Assembly: GCA_000708835.1 (NCBI GenBank)
Contig: DF237155.1
Location: 1 to 64,000 of the forward strand
DNA: 64,000 nucleotides
Source of the DNA: Klebsormidium nitens
Lineage: Eukaryota > Plantae > Klebsormidiophyceae
Direction of reading: 5' to 3'
A program made the translations under genes and the position numbers. How positions within the stretch are numbered: the stretch's first letter is position 1; the number at the start of each line of letters is the position of its first letter. The notes under the pieces were generated by a model, which worked only from the letters and a program-made list of their open reading frames with translations, did not search any database and had not been told where the DNA came from. Positions 1,927 through 25,600 of this stretch are shown in pieces.

Positions 1927-4900
1927 CTAATGGATTGGAGGAAGGCACGAATGCCTGATCGAGCGCTCCTTTTCAGGATACCTCATTGGAAACGAATCAT
2001 TCCAAGCAAAACCGAGGTACTCAAGTAAAAGGGCACTGTCAGAAGCATCGGCTTCAGGAAAGCCCTGATTTAGAAGAGAGAGTCGTCCTGAGTGTCCATG
2101 TTTTGGGTTCTTAAGGGTACTGAAAGTCACATCCAGACGATTGGTGGAACAAATGAGAATCACATCGTAGAACCCACTCACTGCAACGTGCTCTCCTGCA
2201 GAGTGGATCTAGTGCGGAGATCATAATCCCCACCCTCACCGGCAATCAGGAAGTGGCCGGTCAGGACCAGTGCGCAGGGCCAGCCCGAGTCCGCGAGCTG
2301 CCGCCCGAGCGTGCCCGCACCGTCGCCGTCTGCCGCTGTCAGATGACGAAGGCACGGCAGGTGGCGCCGCGCCGCAAGCACGTAGTGCCGCCCCAGTCGG
2401 TCCGCCGCAACCTGCAGCAGAGCGGACACCAAAATGAGCGGAGTACAGTATGGAAGTAAAGAACAGTGGGTCCAACAAGTCAGTGAAAGGCTCAAGCATT
2501 GTCACGTCAGGAGTGCTTAAGCGGAGCGAGAATTACATGTCTTGTGTCTAACCAAACTGAGATCCTCATCGTGAGCTGCGACCGATTGTGTGCTTACATC
2601 TTGAACGAGCTCCGGCCCACCCACCAGCCAGTATGCCTGCAAAGTCGAACCTTTCAGTCAGGAGCACGAGGGCGTAACAAGGGAGCGCAATTCACCATTC
2701 CATTCGTTCCAATAAGCAAGCAGTCTGAGAAGAAGTCGCAAGTCGGCACAAATGCGAGGCCAGTTACACATTGTCTTGTAAGCTTAGCGTCTCCGTTTTC
2801 ATGAAAAAGCGGACCGGCAGCCATGCAGCTGCCACAGTGCAGAATTGGCACAGTCAGACAAAATGCAAGCTAGTGACCTGGCTATCCACGTCCTGAACCG
2901 GAACAGCTAGCCACCGCGGCCGCACGGCGCTCCCTTCCCCGAGCGCCTGTTCGCGCAACCGGCGAAATGCGGCAGGCTGCGCCCACGCAGCATACGCCCC
3001 TGGGCTCGGCTGCGCGAAAGGATCCATCAGTACTACCAAGTCCGTCAAAGCGGCGTCCAGAGCCACCTCCAGCAACAGCCCCGCCGGACACCCTGTGACG
3101 TCTTTAGGCGTCCGAAGCCAGTTGGACTGCCCCCTCCCAAACGTCTGTTCCCAGTCGAAGTCGTCAATCCCGGCGCCCGGGGGAGTGCTCGTCAGCAATG
3201 ACACGTCCAGTCGGGCCCTTCCCCCGGCCTCTGCCTCCCGGAACAAGTGCCGGAGCGCCGCCAGCTGACCGCTCTTATTAGAAGGCCCCAGGCAGAAGCC
3301 CAGGGACATCACGCCGGGCCACGCGCGCAGCAGCCGCCGCAGGAGCCCCAGCTGGGCCGCCGTCGCGTACGTCACCAGGGTGACGTCATGCGAGTGACGT
3401 GGCAGCCGGCTCCGGAAGTACCCGGTTTTGAACCAGTACTGTGCCCCCGGGGAGCCCTCCGAAGGCTGCTGCATGCAGGCCCGGGGCGGGGCGGGGACCC
3501 GGAAGTCGAGCAGGGCGGCCAACCTGCGGACAACGCTCCCTTCCTCCCGATCCTCCCCTAGTGATTGCATTCCGCCTTCCGCAGCTCTCCGCCATGTGTC
3601 AAAGCGAGCGACCGCCAGCTGGCTGCCAGCTTCGTCCTCGGGCCGCGAGAGCGCGGCAAGCTGTCCGAAGCCGACGTAGTGCACGTCCGCAGGGCCGCTC
3701 TGCGCGATGGACCGACTGAAGGTGGACCACCGGTTGCCCACCAACACCTCGGCGTTCTGGCACACCAGGCGGTCTAAGATAACCGGGGGCAGCCAGCCCG
3801 GCAGCCCGGTGGTTTCCCCCGGGAGCGCTTCGAGGTCGAGCCAGTCGAAGGCGTCGCCGAAGTGCAGGGCGAGCAGGTCCCGGTCGCCCTCGTTCGTTGC
3901 AATGTACAGGCGCTGACCCGGGGGCACCAGTGACGTGGCGTTCAGGAGGGCTGCCAGGTCGGCGAGGCGCGGGTAGCAGTTGCGGTAGGTGAAGGACGCG
4001 AAGAAGGGGATGCCGTAGGGGCCCCCCGGGTCGAGGCGGCGCTGGTCGCGGATCATGGCGCAGTAGCCCGCAAAGTCGCCGCGGCGCAGGTGCAGGCAGG
4101 TGAAGGGGGCCAGGCGGCGCACCGAGGCAGCGACCTAGAGAAATTGAGAAGGTTGCAAAAGCCGAAAAACAAGAGGGATTTCTTCGGGGACAAAGAAAGA
4201 TTGATTGACAATCGACGATCGACTTTGCCATCAGAAACTGACTGAATCGACCAACTGACATCTCAGCGTTGCCAAGCCGTTCCAACACTTCGTTCCCGGA
4301 CAGGCAATGAGCACGTTTCTGCGCAACAAGAGGCACTTCAGTCAGGGTGCTAGCCTCCATAATCATACGATCCAATCGAAACAGGTGCAAGGCCCGTGTT
4401 CCTGACCAGGAGTTACGAAGCAGTATCCATCGGTCGAAAAGTGACCAGGAACCAGTTTCAACAATCTGCTCCCCCCCTCACCTGCTCCACCACCTCGTCC
4501 CTGAACGGCCGGTGCACCCACGCCTGCAGCTGTCGGCGCACGGCATCATAGCGCCGCCCCTCGCCACTGCCGTCCTCGCCTTTCGCTTCCTGCCGCCACG
4601 CAGTGGCGAGAAAGCCGATGTCAAGGGCCAGCACGCGGTGCGCGGAGCAGCCCCCCAGTAGCAGCAGCATGGCGTGCCGGAACATTGCGACTGTCGGTAG
4701 CTCGACCTGCTGCGTCGCGTGACTCAGGAGCCTGTTCGCAGTGAGCCACGCATCGTCCTTCTCGCGCCCGCCGAACCGGTTGGACCAGTCGAAGCGGATC
4801 AGGCTGCGCAGGGGCCGCCCTTTCATCACGCTTTTCATGAAGTCTTTGTGCCGAATCGCCCGTACTTTTTCCCCCTTGTCGACGAGCCCACCCGACTTCT

Positions 4901-6965
4901 CCCCCTGTGCTTGACGTTCTGCTAAAGACGACTGTCGTTCTTGTACGGGAAAGAGCTTTCCAACGTCGAGCAGGCTCTCGACGTCAATGAAGGTTCCGTC
5001 TTTCTGCCGCAAGGGGGCTAAGACCAGCGTCCGGTTGAGAACGGTGGCCAGGGCTGCCATGTCGGCATATGCCAGCAGCTGGTTGCTGAGACCAAACTGG
5101 GGCGAGAAGAACAGAAACCGCTCTTCTTCTGAAGACACCCCTCCCTTGGCCCGCTTCCCTTCCACCCCTTGTGACTCCCGGTGCCCTGCTTGTGTCCAGT
5201 GGTCCAGTATGCACTGACTTGCCCCAGGGTATCCATACAGAGTTTGAGCCAGGGCCTGCCGGGCTGGGTCCCCCGACTGCAGGAGTGGGCGCATGGCCCA
5301 GCCAATTCCGCTGTAGAGCAGGCGCCCGGGGGAGAGCACCAGACGCAGGGAGGCGTCAAAGATGGGCAGCGCCGCAAAGGGAGGCAAGCCGGGCGGCCGC
5401 CCCGAAATCTGCTGACAAGTGCAGAGAGAGTGAGTCACGCCCCAGGATAACGCATCCAATGGCAGGACCACAAAGGACGTAGTTGACCCAAGGCATCGGA
5501 ACCAGGTTGAAAAGTCCATGTGAATGGCTTTTGCTCCCTTAACCTGGACCCTCAAATGCTCCGTGTAGATGTTGTTGCTCACATGCTCGGAGGTCTGGCT
5601 TGCCCTTCAACATCGACATAGTTCGTGTTTCTTGGGCCGGTGATTAGAAGATGACCCATAGCAAGCTTTCTGTATCCGTAATAGGTCCTGGCTGAGTGCT
5701 TACCTGCAACTGCCATTCCCCCTCCTGCAGAGGTGGGTGCAGCGCAAGCATGCCCCGCGCACACATCATCTCAGCTAGGTGGCGCCGCCAGCGCTGGCCC
5801 CCCGTTGGGCTGCCCGGGGCAGGGGGGAACTCAGAGTCCGGAATGATCTGCCAATGGCGGTGATACTCCTGAAACTGGCGCCAAGGGCCAGGGAAGAACG
5901 CACACCCTTCAAAGCAGGGGGCTTGAGCCAAGAAAGGCCCTGGAGGCGGAGCTGAGCCACTGGGGAAGGAGTCCTGCCATGGAATACACCCGCAGCTTGA
6001 GGTCAGAGATAATAGGAATGTTGCCAGGTGCTGATTGCCTCTGGAGGCTTCTTCTAGCTGGAAAAGACTTCCTGTCTACACACTTGCTCCAAAGCTGGAA
6101 TTTGGAAGGGGCCAGCACTGCAAGTAGCTCAAGCGTTCTTCAGCAAGAGAGGTCCAGTTTTGGTGTTGAATGCGCAATCAAGAGGTCCACCACTCACTCT
6201 GCGCAAAGCAGGCCCCAAGTACAGCCCTGCCAGGGCCTGGCCATCAGTGATGGCAGGCCCATATGCCCGCGTTGCTTGCAGCAGCCACAACACATCCCGC
6301 TTCTCAAAGATAACCGCTTCTGTCAGATACAGTGCCACCTCATCGTCCCGGCTGGCAGGCCACGAGAAAGGCAGGGAGTCGACCGCGTCGAATGTGGAGT
6401 CCCTCGCGACCACTTGCAAACTCCCTAAGGGCCATTCTAATTGTCGAGCGAAGCGCTCCAAATCGTTTGGCGACGCTGCAGAAGAATTGTCCACTTCTGT
6501 GCTTCCTAGATCCAAAATGATGCAGAGTGGAGCTCCAAGCACCACGCTCTCGAATGAGGCTCTCAGGGCTGCAAAACTGCTCTTTGCCCCCTCAAGCGTG
6601 TGCCATGAGACAAAGAGGTGCAATGCTGTTTGCGGCGAGGATTCAAGCAATGTGTGCCTCAACCCAGCTGTTTTCAGCTCAACAAAGCTGTCAGCCTGCT
6701 TCCTCCGGTCCCAAATGGCACCAGCAGTCTGAAATTTGGGCAAAGGGATGAAAAGTGCAGAGAACCCCAGAGCTATGATCACCAACAAAGCCCACCACCA
6801 GCATCGGAAGCGCGCCGTCCCTCTTCGATGGGCTTTCAGAGGCCTGCCATATACCTTGCTTCCCTGCATTGATCTCCGCGTTGCCAATGAGGTGGCAAGG
6901 GCGACAGCCAAATCCCCATTGCAAGTTGCATCAATTGGATTTGACGTGGGTGACCATATTGCCAT
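1927..6965 (-). CDS. Type II membrane multidomain glycosyltransferase: N-terminal GT-A-like domain + O-fucosyltransferase (POFUT/O-FucT-like) domain + C-terminal LARGE/GT49-like domain
   Basis: ATG at 6965 and a TM segment WWWALLVIIALGFSALFIP. Exons are about 6965..6198, 5973..5704, ~5594..4482 (possibly with an internal intron), 4134..2878, 2411..2240, plus an uncertain last exon near 2100..1927. O-FucT motifs: GLSNQ...A-LA-VLNRTLVL, CLHLRRGDF, LYIATNE, ILDRLVCQNAEVLVGNRWSTFS. GT49-like segment: DVTLVTY...LLRAWPGVMSLGFCL. The 3' end is uncertain. Confidence 0.75.
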
Positions 6966-7049
6966 TATTGGTGGTTGAGCCTCCAAAAGCATAGAGAGAC
7001 GATGAGTATAGGTTATAAACTATTTTAGCGCATCTCGTTACATCCAGTT

Positions 7050-7121
7050 GTCGATGTAGTATAATGGTCAGTATCACCGCCTGTCACGCGGTAGATCCGG
7101 GTTCGATCCCCGGCATCGGCG
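7050..7121 (+). tRNA. trnD-GUC: tRNA-Asp (anticodon GUC), intronless
   Basis: GTCGATGTAGTATAATGGTCAGTATCACCGCCTGTCACGCGGTAGATCCGGGTTCGATCCCCGGCATCGGCG folds to a full cloverleaf: acceptor GTCGATG/CATCGGC, anticodon stem ACCGC/GCGGT, T arm CCGGG-TTCGATC-CCCGG. It closely resembles plant cytosolic tRNA-Asp. There is an upstream TATAAA at 7014-7019 and a downstream T-run near 7157-7165. Confidence 0.97.
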
Positions 7122-7995
7122 ATGGAGGTGTCAAGCCCTCACCCAAAGCTGAAGATTTCTTTTTGTTCTGCTCCCATTTAGGAGCAGCCCTGTCTGTGCA
7201 AGTTGAGCCTCAATTATCACCTACTTTTGATAGCATGTGCTTCGGACCAACCTGAGTCCTTTGTATCTGTGATATATGTAGCTTTAATGCAATCGCGAGG
7301 AAGATGTTTCCATCTTCAGAATCAAAGCCTTGGATGTTCACAGATGTTGTTTAACGTGCAACTACATGAATCAATCGGACTGGCAAGAGTGCACACAACG
7401 AAAGATTCATGCGTGCACACACCGGGATTAAAAGTCAAGTACGAGTGATACCTGAAGCAATACTTCTGCATGCATTGGAACCGTATCTAGACAAATACAC
7501 CATCATAGCACTACTAGCTAGCCACCTCGTGTGCTTGCATTTGAAGGCCCAGTTGCCGGGTTTCAGCTTGACTATGGCAAATCAGATGAACAGTTTGGCA
7601 ACCTGATAATAAGAAGCATGAGCTAGTTTGTGGCCAGACGATTGCAAAGCCCTAGACTGCTCCATGTGCGTATTCAGTGTGGTAAATTCGCGGTCAATTC
7701 TGTGGTCAATTGGCCTCTTGTTGTTAAAACCAACCAAATGATTGAAGATCTGGTTGGCCGAACGTAAAATACCTTCGCCTACATGCGGATTTGCCCAGGA
7801 TAAGAACCAACTCGAAGACCAACTCGGGTTCCCTTTACAGTCCAATTTCGATCTATCAACATGTGTTACGTGATACCAGCAAATGCTCTAGCGCATGGTC
7901 TTCGTTGCTCTGCTAATACTCAATTCCTCAGAAGCATGTGAGTAACTTTGATGAGCTTGCTAGGTCATACGACAGCTTTTCTATCTAACTTTTGG

Positions 7996-10900
7996 TTAAG
8001 CTAAAGCTTCTTCGATGATCTCTTTAACCTCCAATGTGTGTATGTCGAAGGCCCCTGTTGCTGCCGAGGCGGAGGGTGATCGGCCAATGTACCGAACTTC
8101 ACGGCCAACACTGCTTTTTGACTGCTCCAAATGGTGCCCGCTTTGGGGTTCGGGCAATAGGTCCCGCAAGGCCGTCGCTATTCGTGGCTGGACGTACGTC
8201 CATGCACCACGATTCTTTGGCTCCTCCTGAGAAATCATAGGAAAGGGGATGAAAAGATATGAGAAGAAGCAACTCGACCAAGGGCGACCGCAGGTGAGCT
8301 CCAAGTGTGTGGGGCGCTTGGATCGAGCAAGAATTGGTGCAGCGCTTCATCTTCGATTGCTGGACATCCAATATTTCAGGGACCCGCCCAGCGACGCCGC
8401 TCACTTACGAATCTTCTCTATTCCTGCAAGGAGCCCCTCAACCGAAGTTGGTGACACATGCAAAACAAATCAATGCAGATTGACTCACTTGAACCCAACA
8501 CAACTCGGCGTTCGGATATTGGCTGATCCGCTTGGCCACCCGATCGAAGGGGAAGGGCGCAATCTGCTCCAACCGCAGCAGCGCCACGTCTTTGACGCCG
8601 CGCCCCCGCCGAGCGTGCGCCAGAAGGTAGTACACCTGGGAGGGCGGAAACGGCAGAATTTTTGAGCGGCTTCGAAGCAAGGATGGAGGTTCAAAGCCGA
8701 TGCGAAAGCTGGGGCACTCGATAGGTAAGCAAACAGACTATCTGCAAAAGCTGTAACGCCAGAAAACTCACAGCGGCCTCCGTCGAAGGAGGAGCGCTGC
8801 TTTTCGAGCAGAGTCATCAGAGCCACTTGGTTAAGAGTCCACGTCATTCAAAAACGGCTGTGGGGATCCGATCGTGCCAGTGTGGCAGGTTCGTCGAGTT
8901 TAACACAGTTCTTTAACGACTTTAACAGAGTTCTAAGCGGACTAATTGTTGGCGCGATCGAGTCTAAGATGACTACATTCCGATGTGATGGGGACCTCAT
9001 AGTGTGCGAATAACACGAGCATGTATGCCCGCAAGACTCTGCGAGGCCGTTCGTTGATCAGCGCGCCCACCTTGCCGCTGCACAGAATGACCCTTCTGAC
9101 TTTCTCTTTCGGCATGAAGTCGGGGGCCAGGCCCACGTTGTCCGCTGTGTCGCCGTCCGCAATCAGCCGCCTGCACGTGCCACGTCATCGGGATCACACT
9201 TTCGGGATGTGACCAGAGCAAGCTGCTTCGTAGAGAAAGCGTCTGAGAGCATGCCCCTTGCTAAGTAGTACTGCCGGGTCTCTCCTAAATCTGCGCTCGC
9301 ACTAGTGAACCCAACGGAAACCAAGGGCTGAACATGATAGTGCCTGGACGGCCGCACCTGAAGTAGGCCCCTGTCGCCATGTCCGCGAGACTGGAGGTGC
9401 AGGCCCGGTGGTGGAGCAGGTACTGCAAATCGGTAGACGGGCATCAGCGGGCTGGCGCGACTGAGCATTGACTGTCCGATTCTGTCATTGATTATGCAGC
9501 CCGCAGCAAAGTAACAGGAGAGTCCTCTGGTGCTGCTCAGCGCAGGGCACGAAACGGCGGTGAAAGATGAAGAAGGCCTGCACTCACCTTCGGAGCCATG
9601 CATATGAGCGGTTTCGAAAAATACCGGTTCACCTGCAAAGCAAACGTCTGCTTCAACGATGCGCGATACTACAGTGAGGTGCCCCCTAAAGCCAGGATGC
9701 CGATACTAAATAAGCAGCCCCCTGAACGGCTACACCGAAATACACATCACTGAAGAACCCAAGAACAATGGACTCAATCCTACGGCTTACTTTACGTTCG
9801 GAGCCGTTCACGGGAGGACCTCAATCAGGTCTGCACAGGAGTCATGCTCTCAAACGGATCGGCAGAGCCCAATTGACTTCGCCTCGGGGACTCTCCACGC
9901 AGGGTGGGACTCACCTGGCGCCGCAGCGCATGGAAGATCTGGGAGGGGGTGCTGGCGTTTATAACACACCTGAAAAGAAAATTAACCTCTTTCAGGATTA
10001 GCAAGACTTCTTCGCATTGCCGCAGGTTGCGAAACTGTCCGGCGGCTTGATGATCCGAAGCAGCGCAGTCCTGTGCAGAAGCACGAGGGATTTGGAGCAG
10101 GTATCGCTGCAGTTCGAGAAGGCGGCTCCTCGGAAAAGATTAAAGGTCACAATCGCAAAGGCTCACAAGTTATGATCCTTCTCCGCGTTTCGTCGCAGCC
10201 ACTGCGCCATGACCAGGTTCCAGTCGTCTCTGCAGGGAGGCGAAGAGTGGCCCGTCAGAACGTAAGGGCCCTCCGGATCCTCGACAGCGTCAGACACTTA
10301 GCTTCGTAGAAAAATGTCGCACCAAATTGCTGCAGAAAACGGCAGGGACGTCGCATACAGGACATGTTCCCGGCTCTCGTCAGCTGCTACTGGTGAAAGT
10401 TGCGAGTAAGAAACCAAACAAGCTGCGCCTCACTTGTGCAGTCGGTTGGCCTTTGGGATGTCCAGCTCCTGCATCAGCACCTCCGCCTTCTCGCTGGTCA
10501 CGCCCCGGAACTTCCGCATGAACGCCAGCAGGTCCGCCTGCGTCACGTACCCCCGCCCGCCTGCACCCATGCCCCCAACCCTAAGATTCGCTGGCCCTGC
10601 TTGCCAGGTAACACGCATCTTCATCCTTTTAGGCACAGCGAAAGAGGATACGCGATAGACTTACTACAGCCCAAGGTTGCTTGTTCTTTGCGAAGGGCAT
10701 CCAATTCAGAACAACTGTACCCACTTGTGTCCGCGGCTGCAAAACCAGCTTCCATCTCTGCGCGGTGCGCGGGCCCGAGCCCCGGGAGGTGGTCGGGGTC
10801 GTCGTTGGCCAGCTGCAGGAAGCGCTCCAGGTACCCGCTACTGTGGTCGGGGCCCTGCACCGGGGTCCCAAGCCACGTGAAGCTTTGCAACCAGCGAACC

Positions 10901-13900: not shown

Positions 13901-16900
13901 GCATAGACGAAAGTAAGCTTTGGATACGAAGGAAACGAATGTGAAATTGTTCCATTTTGATAGGACCTGACGAACAGCGTTGCACTCTTCGAAGAAGGTC
14001 TTGCAACTACGATACAATCAAATACTTGACTTAGCCGGCTCACCTGCATCACTTCGACCGGCAGGCCCAAGCCGCAGAACGCCGCATCACCGTGGAGAAG
14101 GAGGCCCTGCACAGACCGTCCAGAACGAACTCTCAGTTGGCGAATCGATGGCTTTTCTCAGGCCGTTCGAGGGCCGGAAGACGGCCTTGTACTGACGGCA
14201 CGGACAGAAAAGCACTCTCAAGGCCACTTCGTCCACATATGTCAGCAAGCAATGTAGAAAACCACGGTCGTGAACGCTTCTGTATGTCAAATGCACTCTA
14301 CGCAAGAATCCGCGACACCGACTCCAAGTCTGACGTCCAGGAGACGGCGTGCGGCGTGCTCACCAGGACCTTTTCTTGCTTGACGTCGTTTTTGAAGAAC
14401 TGCTTGGCCTTGGTCTTGCCCACCACCACCGCGTCCACCGCCTCCAGGTGGCTCGGGTTGGGCGACAGCGACACCGCAATCTGCAGCAACAAAAACGGAG
14501 GAAAGGTTTGAATCAGTACTGACTTTTCAAGCACCACGTTGCTGGGTCATCGAGACAGATGTACCAGAATACGCCTTCGTTTGACACGGCTAACAAAACG
14601 TCGGCTCGCGGTCAACCCTCGACATCTGAAAAGAGTCTGCAAGCGGCTGACCCCCACCTTCTTTCCCCCAAACTCGAGCTCCCCGCGCGTGCCGAGGTGG
14701 TACTTGACGTCCCCCACCTGCAGATACTTTGCGCGGCCGCCCATGAACTCGGAGATCATGGCGCCCAGCGGCTTGCGCAGAAAGTGGTGCAGCACGTTCA
14801 GCCGGCCCCTGCACGCACCCACCAGGCTCAGCGAGGCGCACCCGCTCGTGTCGGCAGTCTGCGAAGGCTGTACTGATGAGATCTGGAGAACTGTAGATTC
14901 AGTCGTGTCATACTGACGGCAACACTTTGTCAGCAGGTTTGAGAGCAAACAAGATGTGAAAGGAAGTGAGGGGTGTGTAGAAAGCGAGCGGCCTGACCTG
15001 TGCGCCATTCCCAGCTCGATGTTTTCAACCCCCGACTGGGCTGCCCGCTGCAATTATAAGGACTGGGTTACTCGCTGAATCTTTCCAGAGATCGAGAAGT
15101 CACGTTCAGCTGCATCTGACAAGACGTGTTGCGATGTAACGGGAGTTGAACGCCCACGAAATGCTCAAAAACGATACAATTTCGCAGCCCAGTGCAACCA
15201 TAGCTTCTCACGACCTTTCGAAGGAAAGCGGTCGCGTAACTGACCTCTGCCAGGGCAAACAGCCCCGCCATCAGGCTCTCGCATCCTTCAATGCCAAACC
15301 GCTTGGCGCTGGGGAACTTCGTGGCGAAAAAGCGCTCCAGCTGATCTGGACAGTCAGACAGGAGAACGGGTTGTGTCGCCAGCTCAGAGACGTTTTGACG
15401 CATTGAACACGATAATAATCTTGGAGAAGCATGGAGTAGCCTTGTCTTCTCATGGGGTACCATGAGGAAGTGCGTTATTGTCGACAGGGGCACAACAACG
15501 AGGACCAGGTTGAGGACCAGGTCGCCAAGCGATGTACAAAGCTGGTTTCAAACACCCAATGAGTTGCGAAAATCGATGAGTAATTCCTACTTGTTAGCCC
15601 CAATGGTTCGAACAACTGAAACTTCGACTCATCATACTGACTTCTAACACGACAGTGATGTTGAAAACAAGTTTCACTAATCACCTGTGTAGAGTAGGCG
15701 GCGCAGGATGAGGCGCTTCTCGGAGGGGCTGAAGAAAGACCGGTTAACGGGCCGCTCGACCATGGATCGCACCCACTCCTTCTGTTCCTTGGTGTTCACG
15801 TGCTCGTACTCGACCGTCAACGTCCCACAGTAACTACATGACGCCAATATTTCGAATTCGCTGAATCCAAGAAGCTATCATCACAAGTAGCCTTCAAACG
15901 AGAGGGCTACGTCTTTCGAATGAGTGGTGGGGCGGACAAACATGATTACAGTCTTTACACTGAGAAGTTCACTGGCCCGAGTCGCGGTCGTACCTGGCCC
16001 TCATAAGCGCCACGATCTCTGGGACCGTCCAGAAGAGCTGCGCGGCCTTGGCGATCCTGAGCTGATCACCCAGAAAGTATCTGCACACAGTGGGCAGCCA
16101 CATGAGCGAAGTGACTTTACGAGAAGCGGACTTCCGCCTTCCTTCACAGATTTTGCAATTGTCCGAGGTTAGGTTAACATGTTCTGTTGACAGAATCCAC
16201 CCTCCTCGAGATGCAACAGTCTAGGAGAACGTCACAGTCGTTATAAGAAAACTTAGGACTTTCAGCCAGGTACGGTCCACTTTCGAAAGACGAAGGGCCA
16301 CTCGAAGCCCTTTTTAGAAGACAGCTTATAATGGATTGGCTGCCACCAGTGTTCTGCGCACCTCGTGCGAAGGTCCACTCCTTTCAGTCCCACTGCGGAG
16401 AGGTCCAGCCGGGGGTAGTTCTTCATCAGCCGGTGCAGATCCTCAGCGTTGACTGGCTTGCCAATGTTGGCATCGCCATCGCCCTCCGTCAGCGGGCCAA
16501 GAGTGCGGCCCAGGGGGTCTGGACACCAGCTAAAAAGGTCCTCACCAAGAGCTTTCCAGCCAAACAGCTTTCCAGCAAGATTGTCCAGCCAGGTTTTTCC
16601 AATCCATAAAGTTTTTGATTGGTGGAGTCAGCAGAGTCATGGCATTTCAAGAAAGGCGAAGAGGGGGCAAAGCAAAATATTACAACAAGTGAGCTCCTGG
16701 AATGCTTTGCAAATGGCATTTGAGTGTCCGGAATTTATGTAACAAGATATGGAGTGATAGGAAGAAGTGGGATGGATGACATGAGGACATTATACAGCAG
16801 AAAGTTCTGATTGCTGTGGCCGATGTGGGGCCCAGCTTCCCCAAGCTCCCACTATGCTTTATTGCACTGATGCAGCTCAGCGAGGTGGTGGTGTGCCCTC

Positions 16901-17454
16901 ACCAAGCGTCGCTGCAAAGTGCCCCCTGCTACGGAACGCACGAATCAGCGTCACCAGCTTCAGCGTCTGTGAGATGTGCCTGATGTCCTGGGGGGGCTGT
17001 GGCCCTGCTTGTGCTTCACCAGGCACCCCATGCGTGCTGCTTGCACCACCTTTGGCAGGATGCGCCTGAGAAGTGCTTCTGTGAAACCGCCGGCCGTGCA
17101 ATTTCCAAATACTCTGCAGGACACCCTGGGTGCCAATTCTTGGGACCGACATTGTGGAGCTACGGCAATTCACTAACACAAAGATGGTACCCAACCCATA
17201 CAGCTTGCGGCATCATATCAAATGCACTGTCTGCTGGAAATTGGAGCAGCTCATTTGGTAGGAAGTTGCATCAGTGAAGCACCAAACCCTCGGAAAGTCA
17301 TTGCGCTCAGCAATACTAGGATGGTCTGCATTTGATGAGGAGAACCTAATGCCAATGCTAGTAATGCGGGCGCCCCACCAAAAGTACTAATAGAACCCCT
17401 TGCGGCTTGCCTCTGCCACTGGCAGTGGCGCTGCGCCAAACTGCGCCCAGCATT
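7996..17454 (-). CDS. OGDH: 2-oxoglutarate dehydrogenase E1 component (ThDP-dependent), over 20 exons, with an EF-hand-pair insertion; 5' end uncertain
   Basis: Exons give the following in order: [74 protein letters not shown]...[151 protein letters not shown]. Stop at 7996. The start codon is unresolved (about 17450-17700). Confidence 0.95.
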
Positions 17455-17923
17455 GAAGGTAGGTAGAAGAGGGTTATTAGCTCGGGGTTAGAGTTAGCCT
17501 TGGTAGTCAAGTAAACCGCGCCGATGAAGCGGGAGTGCACAGAAGCACGCCACGTGCTGTCGAGTCGCTCCGCCGATCGCACGGCTGGGAGCATTCCATC
17601 TGGCAACGTTGTGCATTCACACAGAGGCCATCCATGGCTGCCATGGCAGCTTCCTGTGCACAGCTCATGCAGCTCAGGGTATGGCGCCAGCACCATCACC
17701 TGATTGATTTCGAAGAAAGGGCATAGCTAGCTAGGTATCTGTGACGAGCAAGGTGTGGGCAGCTCAGGCCCAGGGTCTGATCGATCTGCCTTCCACAATT
17801 GCCTCACGCGACAAAGTGTCTTACCCCACACAGATTGGATCACTCGCCACGCCGACGCAGGTCTGCATTGAATTTGATTTTCTGGAGGTCTTGTGACCAT
17901 CCGGCCACAGATTGCACCTAACG

Positions 17924-20900
17924 ATGTTGGCGAGTGTGGCGCAGCGAGGAGGCTCGCTTGCGCATCCTTTTCTAGACAGATCCCAAGAAAGACCCGCTTC
18001 TTCTTGTCAATCAGATCACCCTGTCCTTGGCTCGATCAGCTCCTGTAAAGGTCTCAAAACCCGGACTCGGAAGGAGAGGATCTTCAAAAATGAGAAAAAG
18101 CAGCAAGGGCCTCGGAGGCCCAGTCTGGCAAGGTCAGTGCAGCCATTGACCTCAACAATATGGGGTGACTGTGAGCTCCCCTTCTCGAGTCTCCTCCTGA
18201 TGGTCATCTCAGCAGCTTCTCAGATAAGCGCTGTGCGGGGTGTTGCCAATGCGGAATGGTGTGCTCCCAGTCTCTATGTGTCCACCAGGCAGCATCTCAA
18301 CTCCTCAGTAGCGAATCCCGCCTGGATGTGCCCCCTGGAATGGAAGCAGACAACCGGGCAGAGATTACCGGCCCGGTAAGATGCAGATCTAGTGCGCACA
18401 GATGTTGGGAACTGGGGCTTTGAGACCAGGGGAATCAGTGGACGGGCGATGATGTACAATCACAAAAGTGACAGCAGCTTAATCTCTCGGGTGAACTCAC
18501 AAGATCCTTCCGTAGAGTATGTCTCAGAGTCCTTCACATTATGGCGGGCTTAATGCAATGTGTAACACACTGATTACTTTGGTCGAAGCTCAATCATGTC
18601 TTACGGTCGCAGCCTTAGCACTGGCTTTTGGAAAGAAAAAGGAACAAAGAGCAGAGTTTGATTTTCTCAGAAGTTTCAACCTGTCTCCTAGAAAATCCTA
18701 GGATTCTTAATCTGTCCATAAAACCTGCTCTTTAAACACCGCCAGACTTTTTGGGTTCTCAGCCCTTAATTCCATCCCCATACTTCGGCCAACTGAACCA
18801 TATTGGTCTTGGATCCTATTATGGTTTCATACATTTTGCCACTGGTTGCAGGACGATTGCCACCACTTGTGCCGCCAGCACTGTAAACCCCAGCACTACA
18901 GATGATCGACCTGAGGCTTTTGGGATAGGAAATATCATCCTTGGTAAGAGTTACGCCCTTCAGGTGTTGCTGACTTAATGGTAGCTGGCTTTCTGGAAGA
19001 TTGACAATGCGCTGAGGTCATGTAGGATCGCGTGAGGATTATTGCGATGACTCCTGTGATATCCTTATTCTGACAAGATTTGTTGTGTCTTGCCATGCAA
19101 ACATTCTGTCAGCAGAATATTCATTGACCAGCTGATTAGATTTCTAATATGTCTCGGTTTTCCATCACAGGCATCGATATTGGGGGCACCAGGTACGCCG
19201 CATCCTCATGTTCGATTTGTGTGCACCTGTCCCAACGTTCGCTTGACAGCTTGAAGCTGAGAAGTAGTCAGCATTCCTGACATCTGAGACTCACTGGTTG
19301 CTCATCATCATTTCCTCCATTGTATATGCAGAGTCATTTCGGAAATAGAGCCTCAGATGCTGAACAGAAACACTGTACCCTGAACGCCTTACTACATAAC
19401 TTTTGTGCCTCACTGTGTGTTCTCTTCCCGCCTGTCTTGCCCAGTGTAAAGGGGGCCCCTGTCGACACCCGCACGGGCACGTTGATGAGAGAGCGTCATC
19501 GCATCTGTACGCCACAGCCAGCCACCCCAGAAGCAGTGGCGGCAGTTGTCAAGGAAATGACAGACCACTTCGACGTGAGTCCGGCCCAGCTGCCTAAGAT
19601 CCTCATGAGCTCGGTAATCTTTTGCATGTACAGCCCGTGAGAACTCGGGCAGCTCGAAGATGCTGCAAAGTTCGAAGAACGAGAAGATTGGTTTTGCTTG
19701 AGGCTCATAAGCTCGATACTTCGAAGTTGTACTCGACTTTTTACTATTCTTGCCACCTTTTGCAGTGGGCAGGCCGCCCTGTAGGCATCGGCTTTCCAGC
19801 GGCGATCCGGGACGGACAAGCACTGACAGCCGCAAACTGTGAGTCTCGTTTAGTTTGTGACAACCGTCAAATCCGCTCCCAGGTCCCACGTAAACAGTGA
19901 CTCGAGTGGAAACATGTATACACCGTCTTTTGTTTGGAGAAAGCACCTCGATTCTCATGACAAACAAAGTTGGCAGAACAAGCGTCGAGACGTTGCTTCG
20001 AGGGTGGCTCTACTTCGACCGCCGCCAAATGCCCGGAATACTGTGACGAATCGCATTTTAAGGGTCGGTCGCCCTGCTTACATCGCTTCACTTGTCGTGG
20101 TCTGCAGTAGATAAGCGGTGGATTGGGGTCGACACGTTGGAGCTGTTCCAGAATGCGACGAACTGCTCGAACCTGGTAGTTGTGAACGATGCGGACGCGG
20201 CCGGTTACGCCGAGATGGGGTTCGGGACGGGCAAGGGCGAGCGGGGTGCAGTGCTCATGATTACGTTCGGTACGGGGGTGGGGACAGCGCTCTTCATCGA
20301 AGAAGTCCTGGTGAGCTATTAGGAGTCGCGGACTCTTTAGAACGATGCCTTTTTCTCGAGATTCAAGCGGCTCAAAAGTTTCTTACAAAGAATCTTGGCC
20401 GCAATCCTCTGCTCCTCGCACTGCAGTGAAAGTCGAGAGGGTCTTTCGCGCTTGGCCTTACTATTGGGACGTCGTTCGAACCTTGGTGCGCAGACTCACC
20501 TACCTGCAGCTCGGCGCCAAACCAAGTGGAAAACCTTCGGAAGCATTATCGTTGTTTTTGGAATTGGCGTCGCTCGTTTCCTTCGAGGCAGAGACAAATT
20601 GCGGTCGCAGAAAGTTCTCAGAAAGTTCTTTTTTGTAATCTTCTTTTTCAAGATCTGACGGTCGTCACAAGCGGTCCTGACATTGCAGGTGCCTTGTCAC
20701 TTCGCTTTCGGTCGAAAGAGACGCAGTTGGGCTGGTTCGAAAAGAACCTTCGCACGATCTGATTGTCGCTTGCTTCCGGAGCAGGTCCCAAACCTGGAGC
20801 TGGGCCACATCGAGATCGACGGGGAGGACGCTGAGCCGTCGACGGCGGGCGTGGTTGTCGAGCGGCTGGGGCTGACGTGGCAGCAGTGGGCAGACCGCGT

Positions 20901-21559
20901 GACACGCTATCTGACGGTTATGGAGAGATTGCTATGGCCCAACCTGATCATCGTGGGCGGCGGGGTTAGCGAGGCGGCGGATCAGGTGGGCGGTCGATGT
21001 ATGCCCTTGCACGGTTCAGAAGAGAAGCTGCAATTTCTCTTGTAAAGAAGACTTGAGGAACTGCGTAAAGATCCCGCATTTTCAACCTGTACTTGTGATT
21101 CATGTCGTGGCCCGTTCATTTGAAATGGCGGAAATACTGTCAAAGAGTCCATTGCAGTCTCGAAGCCAAGAGCAGGGCGCTCGCGGCCCGTTGCGTGTCT
21201 CCTATTGAAATGGCGCGGTCATCTAGAAATGGCGGGAGTAGTGCCAGCGAATGCATCGCAGTGATGAAGCTAAGAGCCTGTCGCTCGCGTTTTGGTGCGT
21301 GTCCCATTGAAATGGTCGTGCCTTGCTTTTGAATATCTGTCCGACTCGCGTCCGACCTTGTTGAGGAGCTCTTACATCAAATGCGATCTGCCCAGCCACT
21401 TAACATATCAAACCGCTGAAGGTCCTCTTGTCCTTGCAGTGGCTGCCTTTGGTTAAACTGCCGGGGAAAACGCAGATCAGGGTCGCCACCATGCGGAACG
21501 ACGCCGGGATCGTGGGTGCAGCTCTTGCATGTTTAGCAAAAGCTGCTTTGGATTACAAG
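17924..21559 (+). CDS. ppgK: Polyphosphate glucokinase (PpgK-like, ROK family) with spliceosomal introns and a long N-terminal extension; final exon not resolved
   Basis: The spliced chain reads NIILG|IDIGGTS|[43 protein letters not shown]|[17 protein letters not shown]...TAAN|DKRWIG...[18 protein letters not shown]...[12 protein letters not shown]|[17 protein letters not shown]...[13 protein letters not shown]...[12 protein letters not shown]|WLPLVKLPG...[11 protein letters not shown]. Core exons lie at about 18852-18943, 19171-19193, 19445-19574, 19768-19840, 20108-20310, 20784-20985 and 21448-21559. Confidence 0.9.
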
Positions 21560-22687
21560 GTGTGCGTTACGGTGGATGAGTTGACTGACGCCTGACCAGA
21601 AGCAGAACATACGCTGTCACGCAATCCCAATTGCCTTCAGAGTAATCGGTGCCGCTGTGCTTCGAGCTTCATAATTGCTGGCTCTCACAATCCTTCTTAT
21701 GTCAGATAGTCTTATGTCACACTCCATGCTTCACAATCCACTTAAGTCGGATCAGTAGCGCCTGTGGAACGGTTCAAGAGCATATGACAGTTGAGGCGAC
21801 AAGCCCTTATCTATGCAAAGAGTTACAATAGATGCTACTGTCAAGTATAATTGTCAGGTTTCTGCGGAGAGGCGCACGGCATGATGCATATGTCATAAAC
21901 AGGTATTTACGGTCCTGGCAGTGTCGTTTCGAATACTTCCTTAGTCATGTGGAATTGAATGAACTGAACTCGCATTGTAGATGACTGATGCTACGCAAAA
22001 GTTAACATGTGGTCATGGCACGCCTCCATGCCACGTATGCATCTTCATGCAATGTGCATGTGCAACTTGAAGCAACAGATCCGGCCCTGATACACGATCT
22101 CATAGGAGTCGGACGACAACATGCAGCAGCTTGGATACACTCAGAGGCTCGGCGGCAAGCTCGTTAACCGACTGCAGCTGCCACGCTTCAGAGACGGGTG
22201 GTTCTTGTAAGCGATCGTTTTTCTCTCTCAAGTACGTTATGAAGCGAACGGCCAGGCAACGTAAGAAGGTGCCACTGTACTCATTCGTAGGAAGGAAGCT
22301 GTAAGGTGTCATCAAGGCATGGTCTGGTAAAATCCTAGGCGGCCTATACTTTGCTATAGGCACTTTGGCAACAACATTGCACTACCCGCTACCTTCCTAG
22401 AAAAAATCATGTGATCTCAATGTGGCGATTGCTCAGAGTAGTCGCATGAGATGTTCCTCACTGGCTACCCGGCAAAAAAGAATGATGAACGGCTCTAACT
22501 TCGGGTCTAAGGTGCAGCGTGGCACCCCTCGGGCGTGAACGTACTCTAGTACGACTAGACTCTTCCTGCTATGCACGTGCCGATTGATGTGTGAAAGTCG
22601 TTTCAGCCGAATCAGAAGCTCGTCTAATAACCGCAATCCTACCCGCCCCAACGGGCAGTGGAGGGATAGTGTAGCAACCGCTGTGGG

Positions 22688-25600
22688 TCATCCATCCAGC
22701 CTCAGCTCAAAGCCCGCGAGGCCCACCTTCTGCAGGTGCTTGAAGTGCGACTTCAAGCCTTCCCAGAACTGCAGGCAGAGAACGTTCGAGCATTATGCAC
22801 CCGTGCATGCGCCAAACACCGTCAGAAAGTGTGCACCGTTCACATACATTCCCGAAGAGCGGCTCAACTGCGACTGAACTGGTTTGCTCCGGCCGCGCAG
22901 ATGGTGAGAGAAGGCGGACAATACTCACTGTTGGGAAGCAGTGGTAGGGGACGTCAAACTCCGTGCATGTCTGCCGCACAATGGGTGCAATGGCCGGGTA
23001 GTAAAAGTGGCAGAAGCCGGGGAACAAGTGGTGCTCGACCTGTACAAGGAAAGCCAGCGAACAATCAGCCCCCAGAAATGAAAATGCGGCATGCGAGCTG
23101 CCAAGCAGATTACTGTTGTACATCATGTGAGTTGGGTCGACGAACGTCGACTCCGGTCGGGAGGCTCTTGCAAGGGCCACCCATGCGCAGTGCCTGATGG
23201 AATCCCGTATGGAACCCAGTCACTAAGACGTGGCAGAAAGCACTGGTGGCCCAACAATGCGGTGCTCGACGACAAGTCACGACGCATCGTCTTTTCTCCT
23301 AGCAAGGCCCCTAGGTCACCCCTAACTTCTGCCACACCACCCCCTGGCCCCGGGCCCTCACCTGGTAGCTCAGGCCCCCGCTGAAGTGCAGCCAGAAGAA
23401 GGACCCCGGGCAGAAGTCTGCGGTGGTGGCCACCTGCGCCTTGGCCCAGTCGAACTCCACCCGGTTGTGGCCGTCCGCCGTCGGCTTGGCCTGCGGGTAG
23501 TCCACCTCGTCCACCAGGTGCGCCACTTGGAACAGCAGCGCCAGCGTCCACCCAGTGATCAACTGCACACGACGGCACAAGGTCAAATCGCAGCCGGGAA
23601 CGGGAAGGAGTGGGCCAAAATAAAAGGATTGATGGGTGATGTCGCAAATGGCAATCAAAGAGCGCGGCAGGGCCCGACAAATCCCTCTTAGTAGGAACTG
23701 CGAATCAAGACTGGATTCATTACCACGGAAGTCAGGTATTCGGCAAGGATTCGAAGATACGAGCACGCTGTAGCGGATCGGGGTCCTGGCTCAACCTTGG
23801 CAGTTCGAGATTTGCAGCCCTGTACCCGGAGTCAGAGGACGCACCTGCGACAGGACGTAGAGGAGCGCGATCTTCCAGCCGGGGTGTGGGCTGTAGACTG
23901 CGGGGAGAACCAGCATGTAGAGGAAGTAGAATGCTTTGGTGCCCCAGAAACAAGCGGACTCCAGGGGCGTCATGCGAGCAACGCGCACCCTGCGCGTAAA
24001 CACAAAATCACGTCAGGCAAAGTGGCTGACGCATGAATCCGTAATCTGGGTCGATGCCACCATTCTTCTCGAACGGTTCGAAGTATTGAAGAAGAGCATG
24101 GAAGGATGACTACGGCACTCAGAATGCAGCTTCGAAGCCACCCTCGAAACTGAGTCACGAGGCCATGATTCCACAAAACATGATCCCGTGGAAAGCAGTG
24201 GCGTGAACGCAGCTTACGTGCCAATGTGGCCGTCGAAGAAGGCCTTGAAGTCGTCCAGGAAGACGCTCTTGAGGGCGAGCAGGCCGTACAGAACGCCCAG
24301 GTACAAATGCTGCAGGAGCGACACGGAAAAAATATATATGATGTGGGGGAAGCAACTCTGGGGCGTCATCAAAGGCTCACTCCTCCACTCGCAAGGCAGA
24401 TCTTGTTGACGTTTGAATATGGCTCTCAAATGGATGAAAGCCGGACAGTCCTTGAAACGAGCACGTTGACAATCGACTGAGCATCTCGAACCCTTAAGCG
24501 AATGGCAGTCAACCTGGCAGTATATTAAACTGTGCGGAACAAGCACAGAGACAAAGACAGATGAGTAATCCGAGAGAGCGATACATGTAAAGCTCTCAAA
24601 GCAGATGCGAAAACAAAACAGGTGGTTGCACCTACTTGGTACTTGTGATAGCTCTGCCCGGGCTGCGCGTTAGAACACCGCCGGACATCCGGATCGTCCA
24701 CTCCTGAAAACACAGCGGAATCGGTGAATGTTGGGCGGAAGAAGGGAAACGATCGAAAGGAAACCGGCGACGTGCACAGGGGACAATATTTGAAAGCGGA
24801 CACAACAGTGATACCCAGAACCAACACTGTTTGAGTAAAGTTCGTCAGTTCAACAAGCCTTCGACCAGGGCTCCCAAGAGCGGAAAAGCAAAGCACGAAA
24901 ACGAGCTTACGCATGTCCGGGTCGTAATTGTCGATGTTGGTGTATGCATGGTGCCCGACCACGTGCTGCTGTCTCCACATGAAACTGCAGAAAGAAAGGC
25001 CGGGGCAGACTCTGTCAGTAGCATGCACTCTGCTTGAGGATGGGGTACTTCAGAGACGCGGATTGCTATCCGAAGCAAAGGTTCTGGAACCTGAGTCAGG
25101 TAAGATCGGGTGATCCCTTTCAAGATCGACTAAATCAAGCAACGTCGACCCCATCCTGTTGCCACTCTACACGTCTCTTTTTAAGCTGAACTCCGATGAC
25201 AAAGATCGCAATTCGCTTGGTCCTGTGGGTCAAAGCTACGAGGTCTAGTTGCGACCTCGAAAAACCCTCGTCAAAGCGAAACTGAATCGACAAGCTGGAG
25301 AACAACCTAGGTTCGACATTTCAAAAGCCAGGGGCAAGAGGCTAATCACGCAGACGTTGCAGATGGTTACTCGCGTCGCCCTTGATAGGCAATGGTAACC
25401 GGAAATGATGGGCCTGGAAGTGGACACTCGAACATAGCTCCCACAGAAAGAGTAGGGTACTTGCAAAAATAAACCTCCATCCCAGTCATCCCATACCTGC
25501 TGGCGCCCACAAGGTCCAGAGTAAGGCTCATCACGTAGCCAAGCCCCAGAGATTCGGTGTAAGCTCCTGCAGGAGAAGAAGTTGACCGTAAGCCACGCTT

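Follow-up and report, generated by a model that had tools for sequence, protein, structure and literature searches.

A bacterial-type polyphosphate glucokinase gene with spliceosomal introns in the streptophyte alga Klebsormidium nitens, probably acquired by ancient horizontal transfer

The window analysed here, i.e., a stretch of 64,000 nucleotides of Klebsormidium nitens contig DF237155.1, contains on its plus strand a gene of eight exons and seven GT-AG introns at positions 17674-21811, as defined by spliced transcript contigs from four runs of four studies. The coding sequence comprises 361 codons and extends on the plus strand from the ATG at 17924 to the TGA stop codon at 21593-21595. 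Five of the seven junctions were read directly in spliced contigs of the four runs. The two junctions enclosing a microexon of 22 nt were deduced by counting letters in a single contig of 1552 nt (X12 record 9), in which the 112 letters between the pieces flanking the microexon fit a 22-nt exon 3. These contigs supply the RNA-seq support that the first-pass annotation had named as a check. Its span of 18852-21559 was incomplete: position 18852 is a splice acceptor, exon 1 with the ATG at 17924 was missed and the end of the ORF was placed 36 nt too early. A donor at 21559 was rejected, as the ORF continues to the stop codon at 21593-21595 and the transcript to about 21811-21911. Its count of at least six GT-AG introns agrees with the gene model, six introns lying inside 18852-21559 and the seventh upstream.

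Exon 1 (17674..18132) holds the 5' UTR, including an upstream ORF of 8 codons at 17681, followed by the start of the coding sequence; contig X12 record 9 starts at 17674 and the splice from 18132 to 18852 is present in all four runs. It codes for a 69-residue N-terminal extension, which is basic, Ser/Thr-containing and poorly conserved, with 27% identity and a pN/pS of 0.75 in comparison to L002, the orthologue in a related species. Exon 2 (18852..18943), conserved in this orthologue, leads from the end of the N-terminal extension into the first kinase strand (FGIGNIIL-G). The microexon, exon 3 (19171..19192), encodes G-IDIGGT-S, the phosphate-1 motif; its peptide is identical in the orthologue and is there flanked by ag and gt as well. 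Exon 4 (19445..19574) encodes VKGAPVD...HFD and exon 5 (19766..19838) W.G.VGIGFPA...TAAN, with the junctions from 19574 to 19766 and from 19838 to 20108 found in contigs. Exon 6 (20108..20310) encodes NDADAAG, the connect-1 motif that includes the catalytic Asp, and GTGVGTA, the phosphate-2 motif, and exon 7 (20785..20985) the glucose motif PNLELGH, the TW..W segment with its two Trp and IVGGGVS; the junctions of both were seen in contigs. Finally, exon 8 (21440..21811) contains the adenosine motif NDAGIVGAA, the C-terminal tail, the stop codon and the 3' UTR. Similarity to the orthologue stops exactly at the stop codon. All exons lie on the plus strand. At the 3' end contigs are unspliced from 21437 to 21741-21911, the 3' UTR reaching 21911 in one run.

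A second donor at 18375 prolongs exon 1 by an alternative extension (18133..18375, plus strand), which is part of intron 1 in the major isoform. It adds 81 in-frame codons including a moderately hydrophobic stretch, followed in the long isoform, which has 442 residues, by an Ala-x-Ala-like site. X5 contains the junction from 18375 to 18852; in X12 a loose end runs on into exon 2. Compared with the orthologue, the extension is 68% identical and stop-free, its gaps are whole codons and its pN/pS is 0.27. Moreover, both donors, 18132 and 18375, are conserved in the related species. A Pfam search gave no match in exon 1 or in the alternative extension. The 81-residue segment with its hydrophobic stretch might route the minor isoform to another sub-compartment.

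The protein family is indicated by profile matches of the individual exons. Exons 4-8 each have as their top family match the NCBIfam equivalog model NF045942 (polyphosphate--glucose phosphotransferase) and are colinear on its positions 12-241 of 242: exon 4 on 12-54 (47.3 bits), exon 5 on 56-77 (12.5 bits), exon 6 on 79-144 (73.5 bits), exon 7 on 146-212 (72.5 bits) and exon 8 on 213-241 (20.5 bits). Added exon by exon, without exons 1-3, these scores amount to 226 bits, the whole-protein cut-off of the model being 250 bits. For exon 6 the 73.5 bits for the polyphosphate glucokinase (PPGK) model compare with 33.6 bits for TIGR00744, the model for ROK-type ATP-glucokinases, and a profile search with exon 7 resulted in no match to any glucokinase model. 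Among solved structures, 1woq is the top PDB match for exon 4 (residues 24-58), exon 6 (residues 98-159) and exon 7 (residues 164-230, E 1e-15), and matches exon 8 only weakly (E 0.41). The assignment to the PPGK family, with spliceosomal introns, made in the first-pass annotation is thus borne out by the colinear profile matches and by the closest solved relative.

The motifs GIDIGGT-S-VK, NDADAAG, GTGVGTA, PNLELGH, TW..W, IVGGGVS and NDAGIVGAA were read directly from the plus strand, so that the whole intron-split motif series noted earlier was found again. Measured against the list of PPGK functional motifs in PMC4252912, phosphate-1 with its Lys, connect-1 with the catalytic Asp, phosphate-2, the glucose motif ExGH, the adenosine motif and the Trp pair are all present. 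Furthermore, of 60 alignment columns with at least 93% conservation in 75 family members, 59 show the consensus residue in the window gene, G.D..GG being contributed by the microexon. ROK proteins of the classical ATP-glucokinase/repressor type carry a Cys-rich zinc motif (CxCGxxGC) after ExGH. This motif is absent here, with no Cys in the residues following ELGH, yet exon 6 lies above the threshold of the Pfam ROK family PF00480 (24.1 versus 22.9 bits). Because of both, the protein is, judged from its sequence, a ROK-superfamily member of the PPGK type and not of the zinc-motif type.

The gene is under strong purifying selection. The syntenic orthologue L002, found on metagenome contigs of the related species, retains all exons and splice sites, and the summed comparison gave a pS of 0.68 and a pN of 0.052, corresponding to a dN/dS of about 0.03; the PPGK-specific exon 7 is 96% identical between the two. 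The neighbouring genes are expressed and syntenically conserved. It is extremely improbable that the region represents bacterial contamination, a recent unexpressed insertion or a pseudogene: nothing beyond the bacterial affinity of the protein was found to speak for it, and seven spliceosomal introns, spliced transcripts in four studies, conserved expressed neighbours and the dN/dS of 0.03 argue against it. Contamination, pseudogene and recent transfer were all rejected as readings. The earlier view that this is an integrated nuclear gene is supported by the introns, the spliced transcripts and the expressed, syntenic neighbours in a streptophyte alga. What was found at the locus, i.e., introns, spliced transcripts, eukaryotic neighbours and a restricted clade within bacterial diversity, is that of a horizontally acquired, domesticated nuclear gene.

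In protein word searches and searches of representatives, named eukaryotic homologues came only from Klebsormidium, Mesotaenium, Closterium and Spirogloea, and no land-plant protein was among the best matches, which would fit a later loss in land plants. The full-length protein of the window gene was returned neither by word searches nor by an exhaustive representative search; these gave only exon-sized fragments from the relative, 96-98% identical, and the K. nitens paralogue. In a maximum likelihood tree, calculated without cyanobacterial PPGKs and without ATP-dependent ROK glucokinases, the eukaryotic sequences form two sister clades, A (support 100/99) and B (100/97), which together (98/93) are nested among bacterial proteins named polyphosphate glucokinase by their sources. 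In this tree, Myxococcota, Betaproteobacteria and Entotheonella-like sequences make up the sister group of both clades.

For placing the window gene, the likelihoods of each exon over fixed candidate branches were summed across exons. Using the exons as separate short rows in one maximum likelihood tree was discarded as too noisy; there, exons 7 and 8 fell into the eukaryotic clade, no clear position was obtained for exon 6, and exon 4, with its 43 residues, stood beside a bacterial row. An alignment with all short pieces (MAFFT A1) misplaced exons 1, 2 and 5, and alignment A3 was used. By summed likelihoods the gene was placed on the stem of clade A (likelihood weight 0.58) or beside Spirogloea (0.40), all other positions tried being at least 41 lnL units worse. 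On the first tree, two short exons taken alone preferred bacterial neighbours, with a margin of about 10 lnL for exon 5 and of 1.6 lnL for exon 4. Hence, the placement by sequence puts the window gene within the PPGK radiation, at the base of the eukaryotic clade A.

The intron positions connect the two clades. Introns 4, 5, 6 and 7 have the same position and phase in the K. nitens paralogue P0284 (GCA_000708835.1, DF237009.1), a member of the same family in sister clade B that NCBI already names ppgK, and a fifth intron is one nucleotide off. In Closterium, P0158 shares introns 4, 5 and 6 with the window gene and P0039 shares introns 4, 5 and 7. An ancient acquisition is suggested because two paralogue clades with shared intron positions both occur in Klebsormidium and in Zygnematophyceae; a recent or lineage-private acquisition was rejected, as the acquisition predates the duplication into two clades. 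Separate transfers, from similar bacteria or from each other, to Klebsormidium and Zygnematophyceae or to the two paralogue clades are very improbable. They would be in line with the small difference in identity of the window gene to clade-A homologues (55-61%) and to the best bacteria (52-56%), and with the nearly equal similarity of clade B to bacteria and to clade A. Against them stand four or five phase-identical intron positions common to clades and classes, the monophyly of A and B (98/93) and a Klebsormidium-type sequence that is basal in each clade, matching the species tree.

The first-pass annotation had proposed horizontal or endosymbiotic acquisition. Of these, the horizontal route from bacteria is favoured by the nesting of the eukaryotic clade in bacterial sequences, and the endosymbiotic option is not favoured. 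An endosymbiotic transfer from the cyanobacterial ancestor of the plastid, instead of a later horizontal transfer, could draw on the occurrence of PPGKs in some cyanobacteria (PMC4252912) and on the probable organelle presequence of the protein. It is nonetheless very unlikely, with no cyanobacterium among the best 80 of 594 bacterial species genomes, with Myxococcota, Betaproteobacteria and Entotheonella-like sequences as the nearest bacteria, and with named eukaryotic homologues limited to two streptophyte algal classes. Taken together, the sequence comparisons point to horizontal transfer from bacteria in one ancient event, followed by intron gain and duplication. A single bacterial gene might have entered an early streptophyte before the split of Klebsormidiophyceae and Zygnematophyceae, might then have gained introns and an N-terminal presequence, and may after duplication have been inherited vertically.

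We consider it probable that this is a functional, expressed streptophyte nuclear gene for a ROK-family PPGK (EC 2.7.1.63) with the history given above and the following mechanism. The enzyme would bind glucose via its ExGH and NDAD motifs and would transfer the terminal phosphate of inorganic polyphosphate, possibly also of ATP or GTP, to the glucose O6 yielding glucose 6-phosphate; polyphosphate is proposed because characterised bacterial PPGKs act in this way. The N-terminal extension of about 100 residues probably serves organelle targeting, most likely to the plastid, where glucose set free from starch would be phosphorylated by the enzyme. In both clades, members derived from transcripts have N-terminal extensions of 80-130 residues, which are Ser/Thr-rich and poor in acidic residues, and several genome-annotated homologues have short N-termini.

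A smaller but real chance is given to an active sugar kinase of the ROK family that is a PPGK by descent only and either has ATP or another NTP as its sole donor or prefers a sugar other than glucose. Characterised PPGKs vary from strictly polyphosphate-dependent to bifunctional (PMC4252912, PMC7332688), the ATP-contacting phosphate-1, phosphate-2 and adenosine motifs are intact, and green-algal polyphosphate is mainly found in acidocalcisome-like vacuoles (PMC7332688), which is not obviously the site of this protein. Polyphosphate use is favoured over this alternative by the retention of both Trp of the W..W segment and of the phosphate-1 Lys, and by strong selection holding the PPGK-specific exon 7 at 96% identity between species. 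In a report by Phillips et al. [quoted passage not shown]

A bolder and rather doubtful possibility is that early streptophytes took up a bacterial polyphosphate toolkit, including the two PPGK paralogues, which would work in the plastid with polyphosphate as real donor and would have been lost in embryophytes. The alternative 5' splice site would then send one isoform to the stroma and the other one to a membrane or the thylakoid lumen. If so, plastid sugar metabolism in the algae related to land plants would draw phosphoryl groups from polyphosphate.

The data describe an old eukaryotic PPGK lineage in the algae closest to land plants, one that has been duplicated, contains introns, is expressed and is strongly selected. 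The gene is a candidate for the direct use of polyphosphate in eukaryotic carbon metabolism and an additional dated case of bacterial genes acquired before plants colonised the land. A literature search found no paper linking PPGKs to streptophyte algae. Since the enzyme type is familiar and the K. nitens annotation already contains a paralogue under the name ppgK, the surprise is only moderate.

Regarding known systems, the plastid-stroma hexokinases of land plants belong to another branch of actin-fold kinases, are strictly ATP-dependent and are of eukaryotic origin. As functional analogues, they are the proposed counterpart in role, i.e., glucose phosphorylation inside the plastid. The paralogue P0284 shares 57-65% identity with the window gene over the main exons and 47% over the short exon 5, and by blastn its locus matches the window over only 53 nt of homologous exon. 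In P0284 the microexon split is missing, an additional intron precedes IxGGGVS, and the sequence is nearer to those of bacteria. The Zygnematophyceae members of clade A (Mesotaenium P0008, Closterium P0158, Spirogloea P0283) are orthologue-level relatives, but only the window gene and L002 showed the alternative exon-1 extension and the introns on either side of the microexon (introns 2 and 3). The best or only solved relative of exons 4, 6, 7 and 8 is the Arthrobacter polyphosphate/ATP glucomannokinase (PDB 1WOQ), which aligns with the window protein at the phosphate-1 Lys, NDADAAG, GTGxG, PNxELGH, the W-containing segment and NxAGIVGAA. The Arthrobacter protein has about 267 residues, is intronless and has no presequence, whereas the window protein is extended at both ends, by about 100 N-terminal residues (about 180 in the long isoform) and by a tail of about 20 at the C-terminus. 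NF045942, which exons 4-8 match, covers the characterised PPGKs of Mycobacterium, Microlunatus and Anabaena (All1371). Published PPGKs were described as non-eukaryotic (PMC4252912, PMC7332688), whereas the window gene belongs to a eukaryotic, intron-bearing clade.

The window gene (transcript 17674-21811, forward strand) is a real, selected and expressed eukaryotic polyphosphate glucokinase (PPGK) of bacterial origin, with polyphosphate as its putative donor. All motifs named in the first-pass annotation lie at 18852-21595 (+), split by non-coding stretches, and its claim of a PpgK motif series interrupted by GT-AG introns was confirmed. Parts of the window are contained in 20 public runs from 10 studies, all in the form of assembled contigs that are only presumed to derive from RNA, and the contigs of four of these runs were compared with 16700-22600. 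Spliced transcripts, which the first-pass annotation had named as a check on its reading, were found in all four: contigs skip 18133-18851, 19575-19765, 19839-20107, 20311-20784 and 20986-21439, each with GT..AG ends, and a single 1552-nt contig spans 17674 to 21811. The two introns flanking a microexon of 22 nt (exon 3; 19171-19192, +), which encodes G-IDIGGT-S, are not among the directly listed contig junctions; they are supported by the 112 letters between the first two pieces of the 1552-nt contig, exactly the number the model predicts. Together, five direct junctions and this letter count define a gene of eight exons, separated by seven GT-AG introns that are 191-719 nt long.

The first in-frame ATG that is open through the end of exon 1 lies at 17924 and the stop codon is the TGA at 21593-21595, giving a coding sequence of 1086 nt and 361 codons. 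An upstream open reading frame of 8 codons (17681-17707) is present in the 5′ UTR about 240 nt ahead of the main ATG. The limits proposed earlier, 18852-21559, do not delimit the gene, as 18852 is the exon 2 acceptor and 21559 is no splice site, since contigs continue unspliced into the 3′ UTR. Introns 1 and 7 are retained in low-depth contigs, those over intron 7 in two runs suggesting intron retention or pre-mRNA. A tandem duplication of about 104 nt lies in intron 7 (21122-21315); it is degenerate, its two copies being 73% alike. The flanking genes (16903-17431 and 22181-22600) are transcribed too, their contigs measuring 3.3-3.9 kb and 2.2 kb. Across the whole window, Rfam and ARAGORN detect nothing but a tRNA-Asp (GTC) gene at 7049-7122 (+).

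For family assignment, the coding pieces were translated and profile-scanned one by one. They match NF045942 (NCBIfam, polyphosphate--glucose phosphotransferase), an equivalog model of 242 positions, in colinear order: exon 4 at positions 12-54 (47.3 bits), exon 5 at 56-77 (12.5 bits), exon 6 at 79-144 (73.5 bits), exon 7 at 146-212 (72.5 bits) and exon 8 at 213-241 (20.5 bits). The second-best model for exon 6, which Pfam assigns to ROK, is the ROK ATP-glucokinase subfamily TIGR00744 with only 33.6 bits, and exon 7 did not match any glucokinase model in the NCBIfam scan. The top solved structure for exons 4, 6 and 7 is 1WOQ, the Arthrobacter polyP/ATP-glucomannokinase, to which exon 7 aligns end to end (E 1e-15) and exon 8 weakly (E 0.41). 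An alignment of 75 full-length family members has 60 columns spanned by exons 4-8 that are at least 93% conserved. At 59 of these the window gene carries the consensus residue, and the sole departure, Gly to Glu directly before the glucose motif, occurs in its orthologue too. Four more conserved columns (G.D..GG) are encoded by the microexon. Of the PPGK motifs published in PMC4252912, the gene has the Lys of phosphate-1, NDADAAG with its catalytic Asp, phosphate-2, the glucose motif ExGH, both members of the Trp pair and the adenosine motif; a Cys-rich motif was not found after ExGH. By analogy with the family, the ExGH and NDAD motifs would hold glucose during catalysis, and the Asp would act as base.

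An exhaustive protein search with exon 7 yielded three exon-sized fragments of 96-98% identity, one of them on the JGI metagenome contigs L001 and L002 (30 and 66 kb; samples 3300060285 and 3300060284), which are syntenic with the window (16000-24000) on both flanks of the gene. The assembly of such contigs suggests that a close relative is abundant enough in these samples to assemble. The syntenic contig also preserves the neighbouring genes on either side. The DNA aligns in exons only, with about 80% identity, and the alignment stops at the stop codon; the introns are unalignable. The microexon and the other seven exons are all kept with ag/gt flanks, and exons 4-8 show 87-96% protein identity. 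Summed over exons 3, 4, 6, 7 and 8, pS is 0.68 and pN 0.052, resulting in a dN/dS of about 0.03. Exon 1 proper has 27% identity and a pN/pS of 0.75, as expected for a targeting presequence. This fast-evolving, basic N-terminus poor in acidic residues, together with Ser/Thr-rich extensions of 80-130 residues in transcript-derived homologues of both eukaryotic clades, suggests that the protein may be targeted to plastids.

A second exon-1 donor at 18375 creates a long isoform. The junction from 18375 to 18852 is seen in one run, and in another a loose end at 18376 runs on into exon-2 sequence; by contig depth, a poor measure, this isoform is minor. The donor preserves the frame and adds 81 codons, drawn from the stop-free 243 nt at the 5′ end of intron 1 (18133-18375). 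The extension shows 68% identity to the orthologue with whole-codon gaps only and a pN/pS of 0.27, and both donors are conserved, which makes translation of the long isoform very likely. The N-terminal region reaches its highest hydrophobicity within the extension, in a stretch of 17 residues (Kyte-Doolittle mean 1.68), and an Ala-x-Ala-like site follows this stretch. Pfam gives no match to the extension, and none of the other homologues compared has an equivalent of it.

Among the matches listed, named eukaryotic homologues come from four genera only, i.e., Mesotaenium endlicherianum, several Closterium strains, Spirogloea muscicola and Klebsormidium nitens; other eukaryote-like matches are transcriptome entries without species name, and the window gene's own full-length protein is absent. 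No land-plant or chlorophyte protein is among the best 120 matches, which argues against close orthologues in these groups and is not proof of absence. The K. nitens protein P0284 ("polyphosphate glucokinase ppgK" at NCBI) is 57-65% identical to the main exons (47% in the short exon 5) and thus a paralogue. Its gene (3001-8601 of locus L086, on scaffold DF237009.1) has a short annotated N-terminus that is not presequence-like; the 5′ end may be mis-annotated, as transcript-derived proteins of its clade have extensions of 99-115 residues. Certain gene models of Closterium and Spirogloea seem faulty too: Closterium P0039 has a duplicated C-terminal segment, and Spirogloea P0283 has no GIDIGG motif.

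In a 70-row tree the eukaryotic clade A has support of 100/99 and a long stem. With the P0284 group added (75 rows), clade A (100/99) and clade B (100/97) are sisters (98/93); B comprises K. nitens, which is basal, Closterium, Mesotaenium and two further entries. With an actinobacterium as root, the closest bacterial group is made up of Myxococcota, betaproteobacterial MAGs, Entotheonella and metagenome proteins. The window gene was placed by summing the likelihood differences of exons 4-8 on candidate branches of a fixed reference tree, which approximates a joined-protein analysis. The top placement is the clade A stem (likelihood weight 0.58-0.70), followed by the Spirogloea branch (0.28-0.40). 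Trying every branch of the first tree put the best position outside clade A 59 lnL units behind the top one. For the second tree, in which one in five bacterial branches was sampled, these branches, clade B and the A+B stem all lie at least 41 units behind. Taken alone, exon 5 (24 residues) favors bacterial neighbours, as does exon 4, weakly, in the first tree, which is read as retained ancestral states.

To compare introns, database gene models were mapped to genomic loci and a common alignment. Window introns 4 (after ..HFD, phase 0) and 5 (after ..TAAN, phase 1) are common to P0284 (B), Closterium P0158 (A) and Closterium P0039 (B). Intron 6 (before VPNLELGH, phase 0) is present in P0284 and P0158 and absent from P0039, and intron 7 (before WLP.., phase 0) is present in P0284 and P0039 and absent from P0158. 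P0284 intron 1 is one nucleotide off window intron 2. P0284 and both Closterium genes have an intron before I.GGGVS that is missing in the window gene, and intron 3, which makes the microexon, is confined to the window gene and the orthologue of the related species. Introns common to both paralogue clades and both algal classes indicate that they predate the duplication and the class split.

The first-pass annotation had proposed a horizontal or endosymbiotic acquisition. The bacterial origin of an integrated, expressed nuclear gene stands, but the acquisition is ancient and shared. The plastid ancestor was probably not the source: the best 80 of 594 bacterial species genomes (47-55% identity) comprise Actinomycetota, Chloroflexota, Pseudomonadota, Bacteroidota and others, and no cyanobacterium. 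The simplest account would be a single bacterial ppgK transfer into an early streptophyte, followed by intron gain and addition of a presequence, then duplication and vertical descent; a later loss in land plants would explain the lack of their proteins among the best hits. In the literature searched on PPGK in algae, streptophytes, Klebsormidium, Mesotaenium, Closterium or horizontal transfer, no description of these genes was found. According to a 2014 paper, PPGKs are known from non-eukaryotic organisms (PMC4252912), and a 2020 review on polyphosphate in cyanobacteria and algae lists them from bacteria only (PMC7332688); the ppgK label of the K. nitens paralogue is already known from public annotation.
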